A stretch of DNA of 64,000 nt from Paramoeba atlantica (lineage: Eukaryota; Protista; Discosea): NCBI GenBank assembly GCA_977017575.1, contig CDRNVI010000003.1:558001-622000 (forward strand), in the 5' to 3' direction. Of the stretch, positions 5,416-50,178 are shown piece after piece; position 1 is the stretch's first letter, and every line of letters begins with the position of its first letter. A model generated the notes under the pieces. That model saw nothing but the letters and a program-made list of their open reading frames with translations. It was not told the origin of the DNA and made no database searches. The position numbers and the translations under genes are program-made.

Positions 5416-7070
5416 TGAGAAAAAGTGTAAAGTCTTGAAGGTCGTAAGGGATAGCCCTGGCGAAACTCTGACAACTAAGATGGAACACGCGCGGTCAGAA
5501 GTCAAGGTCAATGTTCCATCGAAAACCATTTATTGATGGCTTCAAGATTCAGATGCAATCTTCGCCGCCGCTCCAAAGAGCAAACATGCCCGAGTTTCCC
5601 ACCACAAGAACCAGATGACGCTTGAGGCTGGTGTATTTTCTTGTATGGACGAAAAGCAACAGTTCACCACGCATCAACTAGAGTCCTACATCCGTAGCAT
5701 CACTGGAAGTAAGTTTGATGGTAAGAAAAGCGCTTTGCAATCTTGGATTCAGCGAGTACTTAAAAAACGATTATACACATTGAATTGCTGAAGAGAAGAA
5801 ATCATTGCCCTTTTCTTGGGATGAGGATGTAATAAGTTTTGTTCAGAAAGTGCGCTTTCACGCCGAGGCGTATGGTGAAACTCGGGTGTGTAAACTCGGG
5901 TGCCGGTAGATGAGACCGGGCTATTTATTTCACACGGTTCAAAGTACGTTTGAAGAAGAAGGGGTTCTTTAGCTCCAGAAGCGATCTCTAATGTAAACTC
6001 AAAATGTCGAGTCTCGATATTCATTGGCACCTCTACAACAATGTATGATCGGAGAAAAGTTGCCCGTCTCATTTGTATTAAAAGGTGAGCTCGATCCCAA
6101 GTCCCGAAACTCAAGAAATCTAGCGAATCGCTACCGGGACGACGCATGTGTTCGCATTAAACGAAACGCATGGGCGGACGCACAAATTTGTTCTGCTGTG
6201 TTCAAAAAAATGACACAATTAATGCCCGGAAAAATATTATGGCTATTGGACCGTTTTAAAGGATATCGGCATCTTCCCGACATGTTGAAGCAGCGGAACG
6301 AATTCTCCTATCAAGGCGGGTCGGTTCTTTTCGGACTTGCGGGCATGATTCACTTGTGGCAACCGGCCGATCTAGGTATCATAAAAATGTTCAAAGGTCG
6401 ATACCAGAACCTTGTCCAAGAAGAAGCTGAGAATACCGAGGCCTCTTCCAACTACACTTCTTTAGACGTAATGTTGCATCTTGTGCGACGCGCGTGGGAT
6501 TCCTGTCCTATCGAAAGCATTCGGTCGTGTTGGGCAAGTGGGGGATGTATCCCCAATCGAGGAACCTTGGTAGGGAAAAAAACTTTCACTCCAACCTGGA
6601 CCCAGATACCCCTCTCCAGCAACACGCTCCCATCGATGTTGACCACTCTACATCGGAGGCTTGCGAAGCTGACAAAGAACTCTCGTTGGGAAGTGGTACC
6701 AGTGAAGAAGAAGTGGACGACGACGAAGAAGAAGACGTTTTCAAGTCAATCGGAAATATGGCTATCACTCAACCGTAATTTAAGGTACACAGAGGAAGCG
6801 TAAAAGAAAGAAATAACTTTTTTAAGTATTCTCATTTTTCGTGTTCAAAACGAGTAATGGCGCCACAACATAAACGAGCGAGAAGGGGGGCATGCAAAGG
6901 CACTGCGTGGTGCAACGACTATTTGCTGCGGACGGCACGAAATGGCACAGGATAGCGCATGATAAATGCAAAATAAAATCACTGCCGCCTCCATAAAACA
7001 CATATGAGCTTCCTCAAAAAGTATGCTTAAAAGGGGCCTTCACCGGTGCGCTTAAACGGGGGGGACAATA
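5416..7070 (+). mobile_element. Degenerate pogo/Tigger-type (DDE_1) transposon
   Basis: GEKLPVSFVLKG, LWLLDRFKGY and WQPADLGIIKMFKGRY motifs in ORF 6024-6803. Interrupted N-terminal reading upstream. Right end GTGCGCTTAAACGGGGGGGACAA|TA (7046-7070) matches the MITE end at 41367. Left end not identified. Confidence 0.75.
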
Positions 7071-7487: not shown

Positions 7488-8771
7488 CTAACGGCCCATA
7501 TGCAAGGCATCACTCCACACCGGTACACCTCGATCCACAATACGTGACCTCCAATAGCCCTCACTGTGCATCAATCGAGGACCAAAATGAATCCCTAGGG
7601 CTTCATTACAAGGATCGTCATCTTCAATAACCGCCACTCCATTCCATCCGATCGCCAGACACGCATGGAAGTCACTCATTAGGTGATCCCCCAAGTACGT
7701 TACGTTCTTCGGATGCGTTACTCGATGAAACACTGCCGCGCTCCCGCCGAGATAGACCTTTCGTCCATCCAGCTCCACATCCTTTACTGCCACCTCCGGG
7801 GTTTTCTCCAGCGCCTCCCAGTACTCGAATCCTTTTTCAGCGTACTCACTTCGGTCAATCTCCCGCGTGGCTCGGGAACTGTCCAAGAAGAACCCCGGCT
7901 TGCAGGAGTAGGTGAAGCTTACGTCAAACAGATTCCACCAGTGCAGCGGGTCCTCCTTCTCCGAGGGCACATGCAGCGCCTCGCGAAGCACCGCGGGGGA
8001 ATCTCGCGTGTCGTCCTCCCCCCTCTCCGGGGACGGGGACAGCAGAAACCGCAACAAAAAGTTACAGTAATCAAAATGGGAGTTGGTACACAGAAACAAC
8101 TTCTTGCCTTGTTTTCGCAGGTTGTGGAGATACGGCACGAACTCCGGGCGGTGATAAATATATTTCCCCGGATCACGAAGAATGTGAGGGTAATAAGACC
8201 CACGCAGCGCGGAAAGGTTGGTCCAATCAAACGAGCCCTGGTAGTACTCCGTGGCGACGTGGCCAATCGCGGCGTAGTCCCGCAGCACGGGGTGATCCTT
8301 TGTGGCATCCACGAAATCCACACACAGGATGATACCGTAGAGCGTGCCGAGGCCGAAGGCTTCACTAAACACCAGAAAATCTTCCCGTTTCTGGCTGCTC
8401 TCGAGAAACCCAAACCCACGCCAGGGGGTGTCTGTGGTGTACAGCGCGGCAATCTGCTCCGGGGTTCGTCTCGTGCGTCCGTGGAAGGCCACGAGGACTT
8501 GGCCTTGCTTGCCAAGCGACAGCAGGTCCCCGGTGTGGAGATCAAACACAACCCCGCGTCGGCAATAGCCCATATCGAAGGGGAGCTCCTCGATGGTCTT
8601 GCCCTCAAAGCAGGACCAGGTGGTGGTGTAGCGCTCGGTGAGTTTTTGGAACAGGAAGGAACGAAACCCGCGATCGATCATCGAGAGAAGGGGTTGGAGA
8701 CGGTAGCGTACCAGGGTGTGGTCGAGGTCAAACCCCACCCATTGCTCCGAGGAGGATAGGGACGCGGACAT
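7488..8771 (-). CDS. HAD-superfamily 5'-nucleotidase (NT5DC/cN-II-like)
   Basis: All four HAD motifs: GFDLDHTLVRY, FLCTNSH, KPGFF, YLGDHLMSD. Confidence 0.9.
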   Translation of the reverse strand: MSASLSSSEQWVGFDLDHTLVRYRLQPLLSMIDRGFRSFLFQKLTERYTTTWSCFEGKTIEELPFDMGYCRRGVVFDLHTGDLLSLGKQGQVLVAFHGRTRRTPEQIAALYTTDTPWRGFGFLESSQKREDFLVFSEAFGLGTLYGIILCVDFVDATKDHPVLRDYAAIGHVATEYYQGSFDWTNLSALRGSYYPHILRDPGKYIYHRPEFVPYLHNLRKQGKKLFLCTNSHFDYCNFLLRFLLSPSPERGEDDTRDSPAVLREALHVPSEKEDPLHWWNLFDVSFTYSCKPGFFLDSSRATREIDRSEYAEKGFEYWEALEKTPEVAVKDVELDGRKVYLGGSAAVFHRVTHPKNVTYLGDHLMSDFHACLAIGWNGVAVIEDDDPCNEALGIHFGPRLMHSEGYWRSRIVDRGVPVWSDALHMGR

Positions 8772-18838: not shown

Positions 18839-19350
18839 GGGGGGTGTGCAGATGGGTTGTGGGAGTTTGAGAATGTTTTTTGGTCAAAAAGGTATATTTT
18901 TGTACCAATGTTTTTTTCAATGAAATTTCTCTCCGAGGAGTAGAAAAAAGTTATTAAACTTGCCTAAGCATTTTGTCGTTCCTCATTAATACTGTACATA
19001 AATATTACAAATGCTTGTATTACGGGATTGCAATCCCCTTTCATTTTTGCAATGCGCAAAAGAGTGTTTAGAAATTCTAGGAAGGAATGTTCATCCCGTA
19101 AGTCAATGGTAGGATTTTACTCACTGAAATAAATTGAGTTTATAGTATTGTATCACTCCCTTAGCAATAGAAGCTCATAGCGAAATAGAATTTTAAGGGT
19201 AATGGTGCTAGAAGGAGCCACTGCTGCGCGCTTCGCGTTGAAAACTACCTCCGCGTTTAACGAAGCGACTAAAAAAGAAAAATTGACAAAAAATCATGAA
19301 TGATATATTTTTTAGGTGAAAACGCCCGATTTTTGGGCCTTTGCCAACGT

Positions 19351-20795
19351 TGTGGATTGTCAATGTCAGTGCAACAATTTGTCATACTTAGTGCAACAAA
19401 TTAATAATAATTGTCATACTCAGCGCAACAAAAGGTTAATTTCTACATAATACACTTCATATACTAATTTCTACATAATTCAGTTCATTCATGCCAAAGT
19501 ACAGAAGATTATCTGAAAACAATCGCAAAGATATTCAAACGATGTTTGAAAGTGGCGCCACGAGGAGGGAAATTGCCCGATCGATTGATAAGTCCCCAAG
19601 TACGGTATGTCGTGAGCTGGCACGCAACAGGAAAAGAGGTGGGCAATACCGTTCCAGCCGTGCCCATCGTGTTGCCAAGAGACGACTGGTTAATAAAGGA
19701 ACCAGACCACGTCTAATTCGAGCCAGTCTTGAAAAAAGTGTAAAGACCCGTCTCCGAAAGCTTCACAGCCCGGAGCAGGTTGCTAATACACTTGTTGTCG
19801 GCTCACAAGGTTCACCATCCACTTCCACAATCTATCGATTTGTTCGTCGAGACAAAGACAATGGGGGGAAGATTCATAGGTGCCTACGGATCCGCGGAAG
19901 GCGGCCTTATGTTCGACGCATTCATGGTCGAAGTACCATTCCAAACCGGGTTTCTATCGATCATCGTCCCCAAATAGTAAACACACGACGTCGGTATGGT
20001 GATTGGGAGGCCGATTTAATTGAGGGAGCAAAGAAAAGTGGGTATTTCATCCTGACTCTTTGTGAACGAAAGAGTAGGTTTGTTGTCCTTCGTGTATTTC
20101 AATCCAAGCAGTCAAAAGAAGTTGAAACACAGGTGCTGAAAGCCTTAAAGAAATACAAAGTGCATACCATAACGTATGACAATGGAACTGAAAACACCAA
20201 ACATGAAGCCATCAACAAGAAGTTAGGATGCAAATCTTACTTTTGTCATCCTTACCATTCATGGGAAAAGGGGGCCGTTGAAAACATGAATGGTCTGGTC
20301 CGTCAGTATCACACCAAGTCAGATACTTTTGAGGAGTTGACACAGCGCGAAGTTAGTAAGACGGCCAACAAACTGAACAAACGGCCACGAAAGTGCTTGA
20401 AATGGTTCTCCCCAAAGAGCTTGGAAGGCCAAATTTTACTATAAAGAGACGGTACTATACATGAAAGCAGTAAGTTGTATAGCCGTAAGTTGTAAAGCAG
20501 TAAAGGTAAAAAGTTTATCTCTTTACTAAAGAAACGCGTTATGTTGCTCCGTCAATATCGATTATCCAGGTACTCCTTTTTTCTTCTCCTTACATAATTT
20601 TTTTTTCTTAATCCATTGTTTCTTTCTTAACATGGCTCATACAATCCCGCGTCCGTTTGTGGTGCTGTCCGACCGAAAAAACAGTGTTGCACTGAGTATG
20701 CGAAAATCCTGACATCCGGAACACACCCATATTTTTCTCATTTTTGTTGCACTGAGTATGACAAAAAGGTGTTGCACTGAGTATGACAATCCACA
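19351..20795 (+). mobile_element. IS30-family insertion sequence, 1445 bp, apparently intact
   Basis: 26-bp TIRs TGTGGATTGTCA(ATG/TAC)TCAGTGCAACA (23/26 identical); flanks AACGT|...|ACGTT consistent with a duplicated palindromic target; encloses a full IS30 transposase. Confidence 0.93.
19491..20444 (+). CDS. IS30-family DDE transposase
   Basis: N-terminal HTH (YRRLSENNRKDI...REIARSIDKSPSTVCRELARN), WEADLIEG (D), TITYDNGTE (D), HPYHSWEKGAVENMNGLVRQY (E), LNKRPRKCL. Confidence 0.95.
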   Translation: MPKYRRLSENNRKDIQTMFESGATRREIARSIDKSPSTVCRELARNRKRGGQYRSSRAHRVAKRRLVNKGTRPRLIRASLEKSVKTRLRKLHSPEQVANTLVVGSQGSPSTSTIYRFVRRDKDNGGKIHRCLRIRGRRPYVRRIHGRSTIPNRVSIDHRPQIVNTRRRYGDWEADLIEGAKKSGYFILTLCERKSRFVVLRVFQSKQSKEVETQVLKALKKYKVHTITYDNGTENTKHEAINKKLGCKSYFCHPYHSWEKGAVENMNGLVRQYHTKSDTFEELTQREVSKTANKLNKRPRKCLKWFSPKSLEGQILL

Positions 20796-21172
20796 ACGTT
20801 AACTCAAATTTTGGCCGTATTTGATGCTTTACCAGTAGGGGCAAGAGGCGTCTCAAGAAAAACGTCGTAGAATGGTAGCTGAGGTCGCAAGCTCCCAAAA
20901 TACCGTATTTTAGGGGCTGCAGCTATTGACTTACGGGATGAACACTATTTAAATTTATTCAAATATTACAAAAATCGTTTTCACTCAGTCGGAAGAGTCG
21001 GTACAAAAACATGCCCGTTTCACCTGTTTTTTTTTGTTTTCACATGCTTTTGGAGAAAAGGGGATGGTGGAAAAAAAAGTGGTGGGAGTGTGTAGAAAAA
21101 TAATAATGTTTGGAGAAGTAGAGAGATGTCTGAGCAAACTACATGTTTTTATGTAGAATTTGCCACAGGAAG

Positions 21173-24297: not shown

Positions 24298-26622
24298 TTA
24301 TGCCGCATTGTTAGTCAAAATCTCCTCCAACTTTTGCAAAAATGTCTCAGTGTATGTATTTGATGCACGTATTTTTGTTGTCCATGGGTATTTCTGCACA
24401 ATATTCTGCACCCAATTTTGATGTTCTTCAGAACAATGCGAAAGTTTTGTTCCTGCTGTAGTGTAGAGCATGGACTTGCACACGAGACTTTGATGTATTT
24501 CCACCAGTTGAGCTACTATTTCTGAGCTAGTTTCCTCAACGAACAAAGTTGACTTCGACCGCCAAAGATCTAGATAGTGCAGCGTGGCCATTAAAGTGCT
24601 GTCAAGTTCAGTTTTTGAACTTTCCCATGCAAAACCCCTTTTCAACTTGAAGTATTCCCCTATCGGTCGACGAGACAGGGATTGTGATATGCCCGTTGTG
24701 TCTGAGTTTCGATAAAAGAGTTTAAGTTCTGCATCTTTCGCCACTGTGGCCAGTGATTCAGCGTAGGAATACCACATCATCGTTTCATACTCTGTCGCTT
24801 CTGATTCACATGATACCAAATCCTCATTCGCGTTCTTTTCGCGTAACAAGAAGAAGGGTCTACCAAGTGCTCCATTTAAAATGAACCTTGCATCATTCAA
24901 TTCTTCCTGTAACTGTCCTATTCGAACAATAGCCTCTCGCAGTCTGCTCAGCATTACTCGTAACGTTGCCTCACAGTTTCTAAGATTGCACCCAAGAAAG
25001 ACCCAAAAATAAGAACGTGTAAATAATTGTAGTTCTGTAACCTGGGATTCATTGGCGATGTGGTATTCTACAGTCTTGGTTATTTTCTCGGCCAAGACTG
25101 GAGCGTGCAACATCTCTTCACGATCCCATGAAGAATTTTGATAGCGGGTGTGCGTTAAACAATCGAACACGCTAAACATGTGCGCAAGCAGTGGTTCCAG
25201 CCGATCGCTCGGCATTGAATTGTTCCCCGCTGTGTGCGCCTCAATGAAATATTCTACAAGATGCTCATCACGAGCTGTATCACTCTGTATGTCACATAAT
25301 AAGTATAAAGGGGCTTCGAAAAGTCGTTCTGCGTCGCCTTCCCGGGCTTTATTTGCTTCCTTACAGTAGGCGGCTGATGCAACCTGCATAAGTGTCGAAT
25401 AGCCCTTATGTTGTGAAATGTCAAAAGGAAAACTATGCCCCATAAAGCTCATGTGCAAAACAGAAAACAAATGGGCCAAAAAAATTGTATCAAAAGCAGT
25501 CTGGTGAGTTATACCTACCGTGAGAGCTTCATGAATCCATTCTTTCTCGTTACATAACATGCCGCCCAAAAGCTTCACCATAAGCTGATCCCTTGGATTC
25601 TCATCCTTAGCATTTTCTATGCAACTGTGGACATCCCTAACGAGCCCTTCCTCCGCTTTCTCGAGCCATGATTCGATCCCACTATCGGACCACGATCCGA
25701 CCTTGTGAGCGGCGGACTTTTCACAATGGAGTTTACTGGAAACCTGTGTCTGTATATGAATAAGATGACATCGTAAAATTGCCCACAAACGGTCATACCA
25801 GAAATGAAACACCCCTTCCGTTGCGGCTATCTCCCCGCTGAGTAAACCACTTACACAACGATTTAAACGCTGTGTTGCCGCGGAGGTTTCCTCTGATCCT
25901 CTCATGTTCTGTGCGCCACGGGATTTTAACTCCTTCATGGTCCCCAGCGTTCGTACACGCTGAGCGTCATCCATCACTGTGCTGTTAAGCTCTTGGGTGG
26001 GATCCGTGGCGTATTCCCCGAACAGAGGAATCAGGGAGGCATTGGGGAACCATTTCGACAAGCCTGGGACGCGGCTGGGCTGTGCACACGTGAACACTGC
26101 CCCTCGCCATGCCGCTCCCTCCTCGGTACATTGTCTCGCGGCCCCTTGGAGATTTCCTTTTCGAATGTGCGAAATGACCGCATAGAGCAGCTGCTCTTCC
26201 TTTTCGTACCCTAGCCAGTTATTGTTCTTTAGGAATTGGGCCATAGAGGCCTTTTCTTTTTCCCGCAGTGATTTTGTGAACGCGGAGTCTTCGTGAGCTT
26301 CGTACCGAAAGAAGAGTTCCAGCCACCGACAGGCTAAAATCGCCCGTCGAAGGAAGGGACGTGTTTGGGCGAGATGTTGAAGCAAGACGATGTGCGGTAT
26401 AGTACGGGAACTGGCACTTGATGAGGATAGAGTAGGACTCCCCTTGTACATCTCTTCCTTTGTATTTTCCGCGTCATTTACAAAGAGGTACACCATATTC
26501 CAAATTATTTGAGCGAATTTATCCTGCTTCACATTAAGTAGGCGCTGCAGTGGCTTGGTGAGAGATGTCGTGACGAGTTTTGGTTCAAATCCATGCAAGG
26601 CGTGTGCGTATTCCAGGTTCAT
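24298..26622 (-). CDS. NUP107: Nucleoporin Nup107/Nup84 family
   Basis: HIRKGNLQGAARQCTEEGAAWRGAVF and FWYDRLWAILRCHL match conserved Nup84/107 blocks; 774-aa helical protein. Confidence 0.8.
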   Translation of the reverse strand: MNLEYAHALHGFEPKLVTTSLTKPLQRLLNVKQDKFAQIIWNMVYLFVNDAENTKEEMYKGSPTLSSSSASSRTIPHIVLLQHLAQTRPFLRRAILACRWLELFFRYEAHEDSAFTKSLREKEKASMAQFLKNNNWLGYEKEEQLLYAVISHIRKGNLQGAARQCTEEGAAWRGAVFTCAQPSRVPGLSKWFPNASLIPLFGEYATDPTQELNSTVMDDAQRVRTLGTMKELKSRGAQNMRGSEETSAATQRLNRCVSGLLSGEIAATEGVFHFWYDRLWAILRCHLIHIQTQVSSKLHCEKSAAHKVGSWSDSGIESWLEKAEEGLVRDVHSCIENAKDENPRDQLMVKLLGGMLCNEKEWIHEALTVGITHQTAFDTIFLAHLFSVLHMSFMGHSFPFDISQHKGYSTLMQVASAAYCKEANKAREGDAERLFEAPLYLLCDIQSDTARDEHLVEYFIEAHTAGNNSMPSDRLEPLLAHMFSVFDCLTHTRYQNSSWDREEMLHAPVLAEKITKTVEYHIANESQVTELQLFTRSYFWVFLGCNLRNCEATLRVMLSRLREAIVRIGQLQEELNDARFILNGALGRPFFLLREKNANEDLVSCESEATEYETMMWYSYAESLATVAKDAELKLFYRNSDTTGISQSLSRRPIGEYFKLKRGFAWESSKTELDSTLMATLHYLDLWRSKSTLFVEETSSEIVAQLVEIHQSLVCKSMLYTTAGTKLSHCSEEHQNWVQNIVQKYPWTTKIRASNTYTETFLQKLEEILTNNAA

Positions 26623-32963: not shown

Positions 32964-33866
32964 CTATCTTAGAAAAACTGGAAGCATGCATTTCTCGATC
33001 ACCGCTCTAGACAGGAAATCCGAGGAAGAGGACGGAAAAGACACACTGGCCATACCTTTTTGATTCCACTGAACCACGAGACAGTTACCTTCACCGAAGG
33101 TGCTCTTATTGCCACAGCCAAACAACATGGCACAGTGACCCATGAGGTACTCATGGTACACGTCGGAATCTCCAAACAGCTCCAGAGTAGAGCCAGAGGA
33201 GCACTGTAAGGAGATCGTGAGGCTACCATAAACTCCCCCGAGGCCCTTAAACGTAACCACTTCACTTTCCCTATGCAACGAAACGCCAATGTGTGTACAG
33301 GTGTACGACATGAAGCTCTGGACCACCTCCCGCATTAAAGCGATCTCACACTCCAAGTGTGCCACCACGTGAAAGGAGGAGAAGCTCATGTTAAGGGGCT
33401 CCGCTAAGTCGGTTTTTACAAAGAGGACGGTTTCAATTTCCGCCTCTATGGTGCGTTCGGGGGATACAAGAACGGTAAGGCCGTGGCTCACGGCGCCGTC
33501 GTAGTCAAAAGTAACCGTGCGCAAGTTCTCACCCACTCCTTCCTCCCCGAGAGCTTCATTCGAACACGAACGATTGGTCTTACCGAGCTGGAGGGCAAAA
33601 ATAAGAGCGTTGAGCTCCACAGAAAGTCGCATGGGTGTGGTCACGGAAAACGAGGAGAACCAATCCTTCGGGATGTGGAGACTTGCCTCCACGGACAAGT
33701 CGTCCGACTCCGTGCGTATTAGCAAAGGGGTTTCCTGGGAAAGCACCAGTGTAACCCACTGTTGCTGTCGCTCCCTACTTTGTAAAGAATAGAGCGCGTT
33801 ACAGAGATGGGGAGGAGAGGCTCGGAGCTGTGCGGAGAACACGGATTGTCCCGTTGCGGAAGCCAT
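32964..33866 (-). CDS. RAD1: 9-1-1 checkpoint clamp subunit Rad1/Rec1 (PCNA-like fold)
   Basis: FSAQL...LCNAL...LIRTESDDLSVEASLHIPKDWFSSF...SVELNALIFAL and FKGLGGVYGSLTI fit the Rad1 pattern; 300 aa. Confidence 0.72.
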   Translation of the reverse strand: MASATGQSVFSAQLRASPPHLCNALYSLQSRERQQQWVTLVLSQETPLLIRTESDDLSVEASLHIPKDWFSSFSVTTPMRLSVELNALIFALQLGKTNRSCSNEALGEEGVGENLRTVTFDYDGAVSHGLTVLVSPERTIEAEIETVLFVKTDLAEPLNMSFSSFHVVAHLECEIALMREVVQSFMSYTCTHIGVSLHRESEVVTFKGLGGVYGSLTISLQCSSGSTLELFGDSDVYHEYLMGHCAMLFGCGNKSTFGEGNCLVVQWNQKGMASVSFPSSSSDFLSRAVIEKCMLPVFLR

Positions 33867-45104: not shown

Positions 45105-45624
45105 GTATCCATTGCGTAAAGAATGCATGGAGCAAGATTCCCACTGGGGTTATGGATCATAGTATGGTTCTTAGCTTCAATAAGCGGCTGAAAGCTTCTA
45201 TTGAGAAAAATGGCGAAAAGGCGAAAAAATGGTAGGCGACCCCCCCCTAGGTGTAGGTGTTCAGAATTTGTACCAAGTGTGTGACCCCAAGATATTAGGG
45301 CCTGAGACCTGCAAATTGCAACAAGAATTAGCTAAAACGGCTTTATATACCATAAGTTAGCGTATTTTGTAAAGGTGAATAAATTCTTGTCTAATAAAGT
45401 TTCATACTCAAATTTTACACTTGTACTACTCTGGGTAAGTTTTTATGTTGAAAGGAAAAAGGAACGATGTTCAACTATCGTGAGGCGCAGAAAAAAATGA
45501 CGATCGACTATGGTGAAAAAAGTGGTGCGCTGGAGTTGACAATGGGGTGGTGCACTGGAGTTGAATATCCGGGTGTTCCTCATTGTTCACTTTTTTTCAA
45601 TAATCGAGGGTAGAGCGGTAGTTA

Positions 45625-47164: not shown

Positions 47165-48097
47165 TAAACCCCCACAGCGAAAAGTCACCCCCCTCTAACT
47201 TTTCAGCCAAGTGTCCGTTTGAGCTCATTTTTGTTGCATTTTGCTGTTCCCAACACAAAGAATTTGCGCGTTACAGCATGGAACCAAAACTCTCAAATGC
47301 GTGCATCCGATAGATGGATTATCACTTTCTTCACATTTTTCAAGAGACCAATTTCTCACACTTTAACAAATTAAATCTTCTCCTCCCATGAGAAATTCAA
47401 TTATTTTTGTCCGTTTTTGCTGATTTTTGTTGCAAACGAGAGATCTCGTTCTCCTATCAAAGATCTTTGCTGTTATTTTTTAATATTGGCCCACTTGTGC
47501 CCCCTGGCCGCGGAATGTTTGTTTGCTCAAATTAGTGTGGTATGACGATGCAAAAAAAATAAAACCTAAAAACAATTTTCTTTTTCGGTTTCTAAAATGA
47601 TCTAAAAATGGTGGGAACGTGTAGATCTCAGAATTTTGTACGAGAAAATGATATCTTAACCCCCTTAAGGACCCTTCAAGCAAAACGTAAAGGGGACAGC
47701 TTAAAAAAGTTGATTTATCACCGTTTCAAGAAAGCACCAACCAAAGACAAATATTCCACCACGTGACAAATTGAATGTTTGTTATCTGTTTTTGATCATT
47801 TTTGTCGCAATTGAGAGATCTCGTTCCCCTAGCGAAGATCTGTGGCACTATTTTCATGTTGACCCCCTCCTCCCCCCCCCCTGCTCGAGGAGCATGAGAT
47901 TTTTCAGGTAATATTGGCATGATTATGTAAAAACGTCATTAAAAAAATGAGTTTAAATTTGTTATCTGTGAAGAGGTCTAAAAACAGCGGGAACGTGCAG
48001 ATCTCGAAATTTTGAACGAAAAAGTGGTGCCGCAACCCCCCTAAGCCTCGTTGTACAAAAAAAAGAGGGGGGTGACTTATTCGTTGTGGGGGGTTTA
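47165..48097 (-). mobile_element. Non-autonomous relative of the 45625-46538 Tc1 element, opposite orientation
   Basis: Ends TAAACCCCCACAGCGAAAAGTCACCCCC and GGGGGTGACTTATTCGTTGTGGGGGGTTTA; subterminal blocks match the reverse complements of the 45.6 and 46.45 kb ends. Confidence 0.75.
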
Positions 48098-48298
48098 TAA
48101 TATGAAAAACGTTGCTGTGGACGTAGCTCGGGAAGGCGGGGAGCGCTAAACCCCAACGTTGGGTTAAAGACTAGTTATATTGTAGTCAAAAAAACCAATT
48201 TTCCACATTTTGCATATCAATTGTGTTTGATGTATTCTACCGTTACGCGGGCTTATTTGTACCACTTTAGAATACTAAGCGCTGCTTTACTTACATAA

Positions 48299-48840: not shown

Positions 48841-49100
48841 TGGAAGCACTCCTGATGATGGATCAAGCACTCCTGATAGCCCTGAAGGAAGCGAAAGATT
48901 TGGATTTGACAGAAGTTGAAATGTCAAGCGATGAAGAACCAGATTCTGAGCTTATTGTTGGGCAACGCAGCGCCCACAGCATGGAGGTTGACGACAATGA
49001 ATTCTCAAGCGGGTATGAAAGTGAAATGATTACTCTAATTGAACGTTTGTTAGACACTTCTCTTTAAAAGCTTGTGATAGATAGGAAGGATGAAGGCATA

Positions 49101-49882
49101 CAGTCCAGGTACTGGTTTCCCCCCCAGGCTCCTGAGCACACCGTAAGAGCTTTTGACCTAATTCCTTCGGCATTCAACAGATCTCGAAAAAGTAGAGCGT
49201 TTCCCGTCGTTTTTTTGCCCATCACCCCCCCTGGGTCAAAAATATTTTGAAAACACACGAAAAAATAGCATAATTTTAACAAAAAAAATCCAATATTTCA
49301 AAAAATTAGGAGTTTTTTATCAAATATGGTTTCTTATTCTATGAATTTGAGGGATACCCCCGTTAAATCTACTAAAGGTCAGTACTCCAACTCGCCGAAA
49401 AACAAGACACCCCCTACTACCCATAAAACTTCGCGATGTGCACTCCCAGAGCGCATTGAAATTGTCCGCCAATATAGAAAAGAAATTCTGAAGCCAGAGA
49501 CTGAAACACAGCTCCGGAAGGCAATAAAGAAAGCCTTCATGATGCTTGAGCGTCATCCTTATCGACGCCAAGTTTTAAATTGCATAAATTCAGTACCTAA
49601 ACGCTTGCGAATTGTGCAGAGCGTTCAAGGAGACCATTGTGGGTATTAATATAGGAATTCATACACCTTTTTTGTCATTTTTTATCCCCCTTCAAAAATA
49701 TTTTTATTTTTGAAATTTGTCATCTTTGATCACGCCCACCCAGAACCCAGGGGGGGTGATGGGCAAACAAACGGCGGGAAACGCTCTACTTTTTCGAGAT
49801 CCGTTGAATGCCGAAGGAATTAGGTCAAAAGCTCTTACGGTGTGCTCAGGAGCCTGGGGGGGGGAAACCAATACCTGGACTG
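49101..49882 (+). mobile_element. Tc1-like deletion derivative with ~135-bp TIRs and TA duplication
   Basis: TA|CAGTCCAGGTA(C/T)TGGTTTCCCCCC... mirrored at the right end; mini-ORF 49326-49649 joins N-terminal LPERIEIVRQY to the Tc1 C-terminus (INSVPKRLRIVQSVQGDHCGY). Confidence 0.85.
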
Positions 49883-50178
49883 TAGATGGTGAAAGCGTAA
49901 AAGATACAAATAAGTTTATTGAACTGATGGTACAGGCGCCGACTGAATACCGTTCCTAACTACTCTTTATATTATACACATTACTTGGCGCTACCTTTGT
50001 TAATGTCGAAATAGAACTAAAATAAAACAGATTTTTTGACTACAATATAATTAGTCTGCATCCCAACATTGTCAAAAAAGAAAATAGGCAATGCCCCTGA
50101 CCTATAGCCTTGAACCCACCTCGAAAATAATGATACAAGAATTGTTAAAATGTATGCCGCGCACATACAAGATGATTT

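Follow-up and report, generated by a model that had tools for sequence, protein, structure and literature searches.

How does a complete element of a bacterial insertion sequence (IS) family come to lie among eukaryotic genes? The question is raised by an IS30-type element at positions 19351-20795 of the stretch of DNA analyzed here (the window), which consists of 64,000 nucleotides of contig CDRNVI010000003.1 (positions 558,001 to 622,000; assembly GCA_977017575.1, recorded as Paramoeba atlantica). IS30 ranks among the large IS families of bacteria and has until now been known from bacteria alone; a first-pass annotation of the window, made from the letters alone, had read the element as a horizontally acquired IS that transposed in a eukaryotic nucleus and possibly represents a new lineage. 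With good confidence, we conclude that it is an autonomous-looking copy of a bacterial-IS30-derived transposon family that resides in the nucleus of a euglenozoan (kinetoplastid-like) protist. This IS30 lineage appears to be undescribed.

The element and its copies in the genome

The open reading frame (ORF) of the element encodes a transposase of 317 amino acids that matches all positions (1-267 of 267) of the NCBIfam profile NF033563, 'IS30 family transposase', with a score of 250.7 bits compared with the cut-off of 80. For the IS481 and IS21 profiles, the scores of the same protein are far under the respective cut-offs, and retroviral integrase cores are matched weakly. The second aspartate and the glutamate of the catalytic triad are separated by 33 residues (D230-E264), and the alignment with the transposase of Escherichia coli IS30 is free of gaps across the catalytic D..E stretch. 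The ORF, the profile score and the residues D175, D230 and E264 all agree with the initial description of an uninterrupted IS30 transposase with a complete DDE triad. Equally, no purine-rich Shine-Dalgarno motif is found upstream of the transposase ATG, as had been noticed at first reading, and a scan of the element for sigma-70 promoters and terminators yielded matches no more frequent than those in shuffled sequences.

The termini of the element were fixed from three sources: a comparison of the copies, the homology of the ends to IS30, and the terminus GGCGGATT, which the nearest bacterial element has. Thus delimited, the element is bounded by terminal inverted repeats (TIRs) that are identical to each other in 23 of the 26 bases; the match extends to 31 nucleotides at 90% identity because the flanks are palindromic. 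When compared with the right end of the E. coli K-12 element IS30A, the left end shows 19 identical bases of the 26, and both ends are 26 nucleotides long. The identical bases include the terminal TGT.GATT and the inner TGTCA.TGCAACA, so that the proposed correspondence to classical IS30 in both length and end motifs is borne out against the actual IS30A. The inner ~20 bp of the inverted end comprise a motif, TTGTCATACTNAGTGCAACA, that is present in three copies at each end, and these motifs are candidate transposase-binding sites. The non-coding sequence in subfamily 1, to which the window element belongs, and in subfamily 2 (both described below) amounts to 140-163 bp on the 5' side of the ORF and 314-351 bp on the 3' side. 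The GC content of the element is 45%, with 43% at third codon positions, against the window average of 46%; as an indicator of origin, GC content was discarded because the host genes vary too widely (38-69% at third positions) for it to discriminate.

The element is far from being alone in this genome. Protein relatives were searched for in two libraries, of 5.8 billion clusters and 1.84 billion representatives, in which eukaryotic genomes may be poorly covered; in both, every relative with more than 51% identity to the 317-amino-acid protein comes from the same long-read assembly, ERZ24900291 in the European Nucleotide Archive, and neither library holds a relative above this level outside that assembly, that is, from a second eukaryotic species. 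The family comprises five subfamilies, four of which show 44-63% protein identity to the window type (Table 1). Copies are found at 11 or more loci in eukaryotic context, and no copy-bearing contig looks bacterial: jointly, these contigs also encode kinesin, HSP90, Piwi/PAZ, ubiquitin, Nup84/107 and Rad1, and the IS30-type copies are nested among eukaryotic transposons (Tc1-like, Merlin-like and reverse-transcriptase elements).

Subfamily 1 is represented at no fewer than six loci (the window, L001, L002, L005, L030 and a fragment on L006), and among these copies, only that in the window was seen to be intact. In the L005 copy, the cut at the 3' end, at about position 7770, adjoins an ORF of the Tc1/mariner type (DDE_3), so that the two transposons are nested. 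Among the three full-length copies of subfamily 2, those on L006 and L007 are each 96.5-98.1% identical to the one on L003. The window itself includes a 3' remnant of this subfamily, which ends in ...CCGGG like the L003 element and is followed by TGT. No inverted ends were found for subfamily 3 on L004. On both sides of the ORF of subfamily 5 are arrays of about 250 bp, inverted relative to each other, at 5720-5972 and 7586-7800 of L032; they consist of ~19-bp units (GCACATTCACATGCATAA-like), and the architecture is foldback-like. On the contig of subfamily 4, the region 3' of the ORF (L029:2830-3400) is a tandem minisatellite with units of ~45-90 bp (TTATATTTCCAGTTATCATATAATTACTTGTAAGTACATCAGAGAA-like). 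Within a family that drifted towards eukaryote-style ends, the window copy thus resembles an IS most.

That the family moved within this genome can be gleaned from the target duplications. Perfect 3-bp duplications flank five of the six complete copies compared when the window copy is set apart, and with the chance of a 3-bp match being 1/64 for each copy, this is far beyond coincidence. The presence of such duplications on complete copies therefore implies insertion by staggered cuts in this genome. When the window ORF is compared with its broken paralogues, the ratio of nonsynonymous to synonymous substitutions is ~0.6, an estimate from small counts, and together with the frameshifts and stops, it fits the pattern of copies decaying after insertion. 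Among the short-read joints, no left-to-right, end-to-end junction was seen that would represent joined ends or a circle. The copy count, with the six or more loci of subfamily 1 and the three full copies of subfamily 2, supports transposition in the genome, and the claim of the first-pass annotation that this took place within the present nucleus accords with several loci that have differing flanks and 3-bp duplications of their own.

Insertion site and genomic setting

The flanks of the window element read AACGT on the left and ACGTT on the right, so that the element is enclosed by direct repeats of ACGT. Because the target is palindromic, the sequence before insertion, AACGTT, is the same under a 2-, 4- or 6-bp reading of the duplication, and it is consistent with the L001 paralogue of the surrounding repeat, in which there is no insertion. 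A duplicated palindromic target had been noted originally, with 4-bp ACGT and 2-bp CG as the options; the flanks do read that way, and 4 bp is preferred, given that both the CG reading and a 6-bp reading (AACGTT) were rejected as needing termini that conflict with the other copies and with IS30. Alternatively, a 3-bp duplication could have been joined by a single additional base on one side of the element. The left-terminal T of the window copy is common to the copy on L005.

The element landed in a host repeat. The paralogue of this repeat on L001 is only 77% identical, and bin 19070-19256, into which the left part of the repeat core falls, exceeds the unique flank in word depth by a factor of about 220. 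The insertion is bracketed by a perfect 20-bp inverted pair, for which the chance expectation is 0.01, and which had been taken for the ends of a miniature inverted-repeat transposable element (MITE). The pair is real and a host repeat was indeed hit; a MITE with those ends is unproven and not supported because the pair is found only here, no duplication accompanies it and only the inner core is repeated. Specifically, the pair has no other occurrence in the ~170 kb of the organism's DNA that were compared, and no flanking duplication is visible around it. A candidate empty allele, namely a joint that skips 19253-20858, was dismissed: it has 27 letters on the shorter side and is probably another copy of the repeat. 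Within the repeat lies a high-copy module at approximately 19222-19280, with edges that loose ends place at ~19222 and at 19275-19283; it contains an internal stem, CGCTTCG...CGAAGCG, and recurs at L029:1775-1975 as an 86-nucleotide perfect foldback. Immediately upstream of the insertion, the segment 18074-18943 is a GC-rich, low-complexity sequence with long ORFs that overlap on both strands; their translations are rich in Pro, Gly and Glu, and they are probably not coding.

The genes of the window also bear on the identity of the host. The suggestion that host genes lie on both sides of the element proved correct, with a eukaryote-type 5'-nucleotidase on one side and Nup84/107 and Rad1 on the other; a gene for an NS-type endonuclease, on the minus strand, is located on the same contig. 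The clusters nearest to the 5'-nucleotidase are 99-100% eukaryotic, and the nearest Atlas cluster of the nucleoporin consists mostly of Euglenozoa. An Rfam search over the whole window gave nothing at the gathering score and no spliced-leader gene. As a lead, sequence comparison thus points to a host that would be a euglenozoan of the kinetoplastid-like kind.

Farther along the window are two regions that are shared with L002. At 47605-48103, two segments match L002:2252-3971 at 93-96% identity on either side of an ORF of the IS1595/Merlin type that is itself absent from the window, so that the window segment looks like a Merlin-like deletion derivative. At 49097-49883, a 787-bp host repeat with short inverted duplicates at its edges is 97% identical to L002:10782-11569.

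Table 1. Positions of the IS30-type element, its copies and surrounding features (window coordinates unless another contig is named; identities are to the window copy or its protein unless stated otherwise)
Feature	Position	Strand	Details
Complete IS30-type element, subfamily 1	19351..20795	+	1445 bp; termini from five other copies and IS30 end homology
Left TIR	19351..19376	+	26 bp; TGTGGATTGTCAATGTCAGTGCAACA
Right TIR	20770..20795	-	26 bp
Direct copies of end motif, left end	19357-19378, 19379-19400, 19411-19432	+	three copies, ~20 bp
Inverted copies of same motif, right end	20685-20705, 20743-20765, 20770-20790	-	three copies, ~20 bp
Transposase gene	19491..20444	+	317 amino acids, uninterrupted
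HTH_38 domain	19497-19628		amino acids 3-46; Pfam 2e-13
rve integrase core	19992-20261		amino acids 168-257; Pfam 5e-9
Catalytic residues	20013, 20178, 20280		D175, D230, E264
Target-site duplication, left copy	19347..19350		ACGT direct repeat
Target-site duplication, right copy	20796..20799		ACGT direct repeat
Host repeat core receiving the insertion	19209..19338		uninterrupted paralogue at L001:4048-4300
Inverted pair bracketing insertion, left arm	19088..19107	+	20 bp, perfect
Inverted pair bracketing insertion, right arm	20925..20944	-	20 bp, perfect
5'-nucleotidase, eukaryote-type	7.5-8.8 kb	-	
Nup84/107 nucleoporin	24301-26622	-	
Rad1	32967-33866	-	
Subfamily 2, 3' remnant	45364..45573	+	86% identical to right end of L003 element
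Subfamily 1 copy	L001:6751-8193		97.6%; full length, frameshift and stop; 3-bp duplication ACT
Subfamily 1 copy	L030:3861-5307		96.3%; full length, broken by frameshifts/stops; 3-bp duplication TCA
Subfamily 1 copy	L002:7440-8639		94.5%; internal deletions; imperfect 3-bp duplication CCA/CCT
Subfamily 1 copy	L005		98-99%; 566-bp insert (L005:6619-7185), 3' end cut by another transposon
Subfamily 1 copy	L006		91.8%; 3' fragment
Subfamily 2 copies	L003, L006, L007		57% protein identity; three 1425-bp copies, two with intact 315-amino-acid ORF; 3-bp duplications CCT, GAT, TTT
Subfamily 3	L004		63% protein identity; beside ubiquitin and reverse-transcriptase genes
Subfamily 4	L029		55% protein identity; partial ORF (239 amino acids), 5.6-kb contig
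Subfamily 5	L032:6001-6828		44% protein identity; 275-amino-acid ORF between kinesin/PIG-P and HSP90

Origin of the family and competing explanations

In a tree of 126 sequences, subfamilies 1-3 form a single clade with a long stem (Shimodaira-Hasegawa-like approximate likelihood ratio test [SH-aLRT] support of 99), which is adjoined by 116 metagenomic IS30 transposases. One member of a neighbouring group sits beside dnaN and a cytochrome oxidase operon, and the neighbouring groups are considered bacterial because of this context. In a second tree, of 60 sequences, the clade of subfamilies 1-3 is supported at 100/100, and so is the pairing of subfamily 4 with the protein P0132, which was traced to the same eukaryotic assembly. 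With all five subfamilies labelled, these form one clade with support of 97/96 that is present in 98% of the bootstrap trees, leaves E. coli IS30 outside and lies inside the diversity of bacterial IS30. Judging from these trees, a single entry followed by diversification would be the simplest reading, and two entries are possible. The nearest genome-derived relatives, which are 46-48% identical over most of the length, belong to a betaproteobacterial bin and to Akkermansiaceae bins and lie on short contigs of metagenome-assembled genomes (MAGs); one partial genome-derived fragment reaches 56%. The anticipated new lineage is upheld by the phylogeny of the transposases, with the 97/96 clade and no outside relative above 51% identity. 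The notion of a horizontally acquired IS stands in part: the element is bacterial-derived and moved in the nucleus, but it is not a fresh import, being part of a family that is old, has diversified and is for the most part decayed.

The junctions of the window element were assessed in two ways. The exact 317-amino-acid protein is recorded on contig ctg3939l of ERZ24900291, which matches the window over 1950 bp that span both junctions, with one mismatch (99.95%). Four DNA runs from this organism, in the form of Logan contigs, supplied depth and junction data; the unique flank has a word depth of 3.5 (X1) and 39-44 (X2). The right-junction unitigs cover 28-29 bases of the element and 180 bases of the DNA beyond its right end without a mismatch, at depths of 3.7 compared with 3.5 for the flank in X1 and 40.5 compared with 44 in X2, and in X4, a 197-nucleotide piece extends across the same junction. 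The depth of the element interior is ~5-7 times that of the flanks, and loose ends exit the element at 20793-20795 into different sequences; both the raised depth and the diverging ends are as expected for several genomic copies. Hence the right junction is found at the depth of single-copy host DNA, and ctg3939l agrees across both junctions, which disfavours a chimera.

Several observations weigh against the interpretation of the window element as an autonomous-looking nuclear transposon in a family of single origin. In X1 and X2, the part of each right-junction unitig that lies in the element is only 28-29 letters long and just misses the threshold of 31, as happens with k=31 unitigs at the border of a repeat. 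At the left junction, next to a repeat of very high copy number, there is no bridging piece among the short-read pieces listed. The close relatives all come from ERZ24900291 and the DNA runs from one study, so that these sources of support are not independent. The window copy has a 4-bp duplication, ACGT, compared with 3 bp in the other copies, and the MITE proposed to have received it is a weak point. In the 60-sequence tree, one of the two that test for a single origin, subfamilies 4 and 5 fall in a polytomy apart from subfamilies 1-3. Finally, the words of the ORF are absent from the single RNA-labelled run of the organism, and the ORF is antisense to its four Pfam-matched neighbour genes, all of which are on the minus strand.

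The alternative that survives best, although we regard it as improbable, is that IS30 elements were transferred from bacteria to the eukaryote several times independently. The polytomy of subfamilies 4 and 5 speaks for it, and a bacterivorous host would be expected to meet many IS30 elements. Against multiple transfers stand the unification of all five subfamilies in one well-supported clade and the long non-coding regions and tripled motifs that subfamilies 1 and 2 share and that are absent from the nearest bacterial element.

An assembly artefact, that is, an IS of a co-cultured bacterium joined into a eukaryotic contig, or a chimera, is very unlikely. The names of the contigs hint at a mixed culture assembled from long reads in metagenome style, and the unbridged left junction also leaves room for such an error. 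However, an artefact is hard to reconcile with the eukaryotic context of the 11 or more loci, the decayed copies with their target duplications, the nesting among Tc1-like, Merlin-like and reverse-transcriptase elements, the single-copy host depth of the right junction in both X1 and X2, the near-complete identity of two assemblies and the lack of any relative above 51% identity in a bacterial context.

Just as little probability attaches to a single transfer that was dead on arrival and stayed immobile in its new host, with the IS5-like element of a bdelloid rotifer as a parallel. There is precedent for such an event (PMC3673617), and evidence of transcription is missing here, but the copies occupy unrelated loci with differing flanks and a 3-bp duplication each, they make up five divergent subfamilies, and the nearest bacterial protein is at most 51% identical. 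Least probable of all is the domestication of the 317-amino-acid ORF as a host gene that is no longer mobile: it is the only intact ORF of subfamily 1 seen, but both inverted ends, the end motifs and the flanking duplication are retained, the ORF is antisense in a repeat-rich intergenic stretch and its paralogues decay like transposon copies.

Having set these alternatives aside, we return to a resident transposon family derived from bacterial IS30. IS30-family elements move via a joined-ends or circular intermediate and generate target duplications of 2-3 bp, the range given in ISfinder. By analogy, the N-terminal helix-turn-helix (HTH) of the protist transposase would bind the ~20-bp motif that is tripled at each end, the DDE core would cleave at the TGT/GGT termini, and the joined ends would be inserted at a target site opened by cuts staggered by 3 bp, in the manner of bacterial IS30-family elements. 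The ancestor of the family may have come into the eukaryotic lineage from a bacterium in a single event, and the subsequent diversification probably involved a gain of ~350-400 bp of non-coding sequence and multiplication of the end motifs; most copies have since decayed. A broader proposal, to which we incline without much assurance, is that the family founds a superfamily, 'IS30EU', that would stem from one IS30 transfer into a euglenozoan and encompass at least five subfamilies, with ends ranging from IS-like to long arrays and with the window element as a candidate for a still-active master copy.

A diversified IS30 lineage that transposed in a protist nucleus would be a new link between the transposons of prokaryotes and those of eukaryotes, and it would present a tractable case of a bacterial IS that adapts to a host with polycistronic transcription and without conventional gene promoters, the adaptations seen being the longer untranslated parts and the multiplied end motifs. 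Furthermore, a small, simple transposase with defined ends might serve as a genetic tool in kinetoplastid-like organisms.

Comparison with known systems

Several eukaryotic superfamilies are named after IS families, namely ISL2EU, IS3EU and IS481EU, and more have been predicted (Kojima and Bao 2023, PMC10045372); IS30 does not occur in that article. The protist family resembles IS481EU, IS3EU and ISL2EU in being a eukaryote-resident, multi-copy clade inside a prokaryotic IS family (PMC10045372), and differs in that the IS family is another one and the IS30-type copies are seen in one organism only. The term 'IS30EU' was not found in the literature searched, nor, with Repbase and Dfam outside the search, any paper that links IS30 with eukaryotic genomes, kinetoplastids or Euglenozoa. 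An earlier survey, in which eukaryotic genomes were queried with all IS families, recovered only IS607, and the IS5-like element of the bdelloid rotifer Adineta vaga, single-copy and silent, was attributed to horizontal transfer (Gilbert and Cordaux 2013, PMC3673617). The window element is similar to the latter and to the eukaryotic IS607-like elements as a bacterial-type IS in a eukaryotic genome; the IS607 elements, however, use a serine recombinase, unlike the DDE transposase encoded at 19491-20444.

Among bacterial elements, E. coli IS30A (insI1) is alike in being a one-gene element with a transposase that combines an HTH and a DDE domain with the same D-to-E spacing. The two proteins are only 33% identical, the E. 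coli element is 1221 bp long and encodes 383 amino acids with an extra N-terminal HTH in a bacterial host, and its target duplication is 2 bp (AC), compared with 3 bp in the protist family. The IS4351-type and other plasmid-borne IS30 elements have a transposase of ~310-320 amino acids, which aligns over 97-98% of the query with ~40-41% identity; the nearest bacterial and metagenomic relatives (P0005-P0120) have proteins of similar size (315-318 amino acids) that are 46-51% identical over the full length. The nearest bacterial element, found on the MAG contigs L009 and L010, shares the terminal GGCGGATT with subfamily 2. It is 1075 bp long, with the ORF taking up ~88% of the length, and has no repeated end motifs, in contrast to subfamilies 1 and 2, which are longer (1445 and 1425 bp) and have tripled ones. 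Mechanistically, the element is ordinary for IS30, and what is unusual about it is the domain of life of its host and the architecture of its ends.

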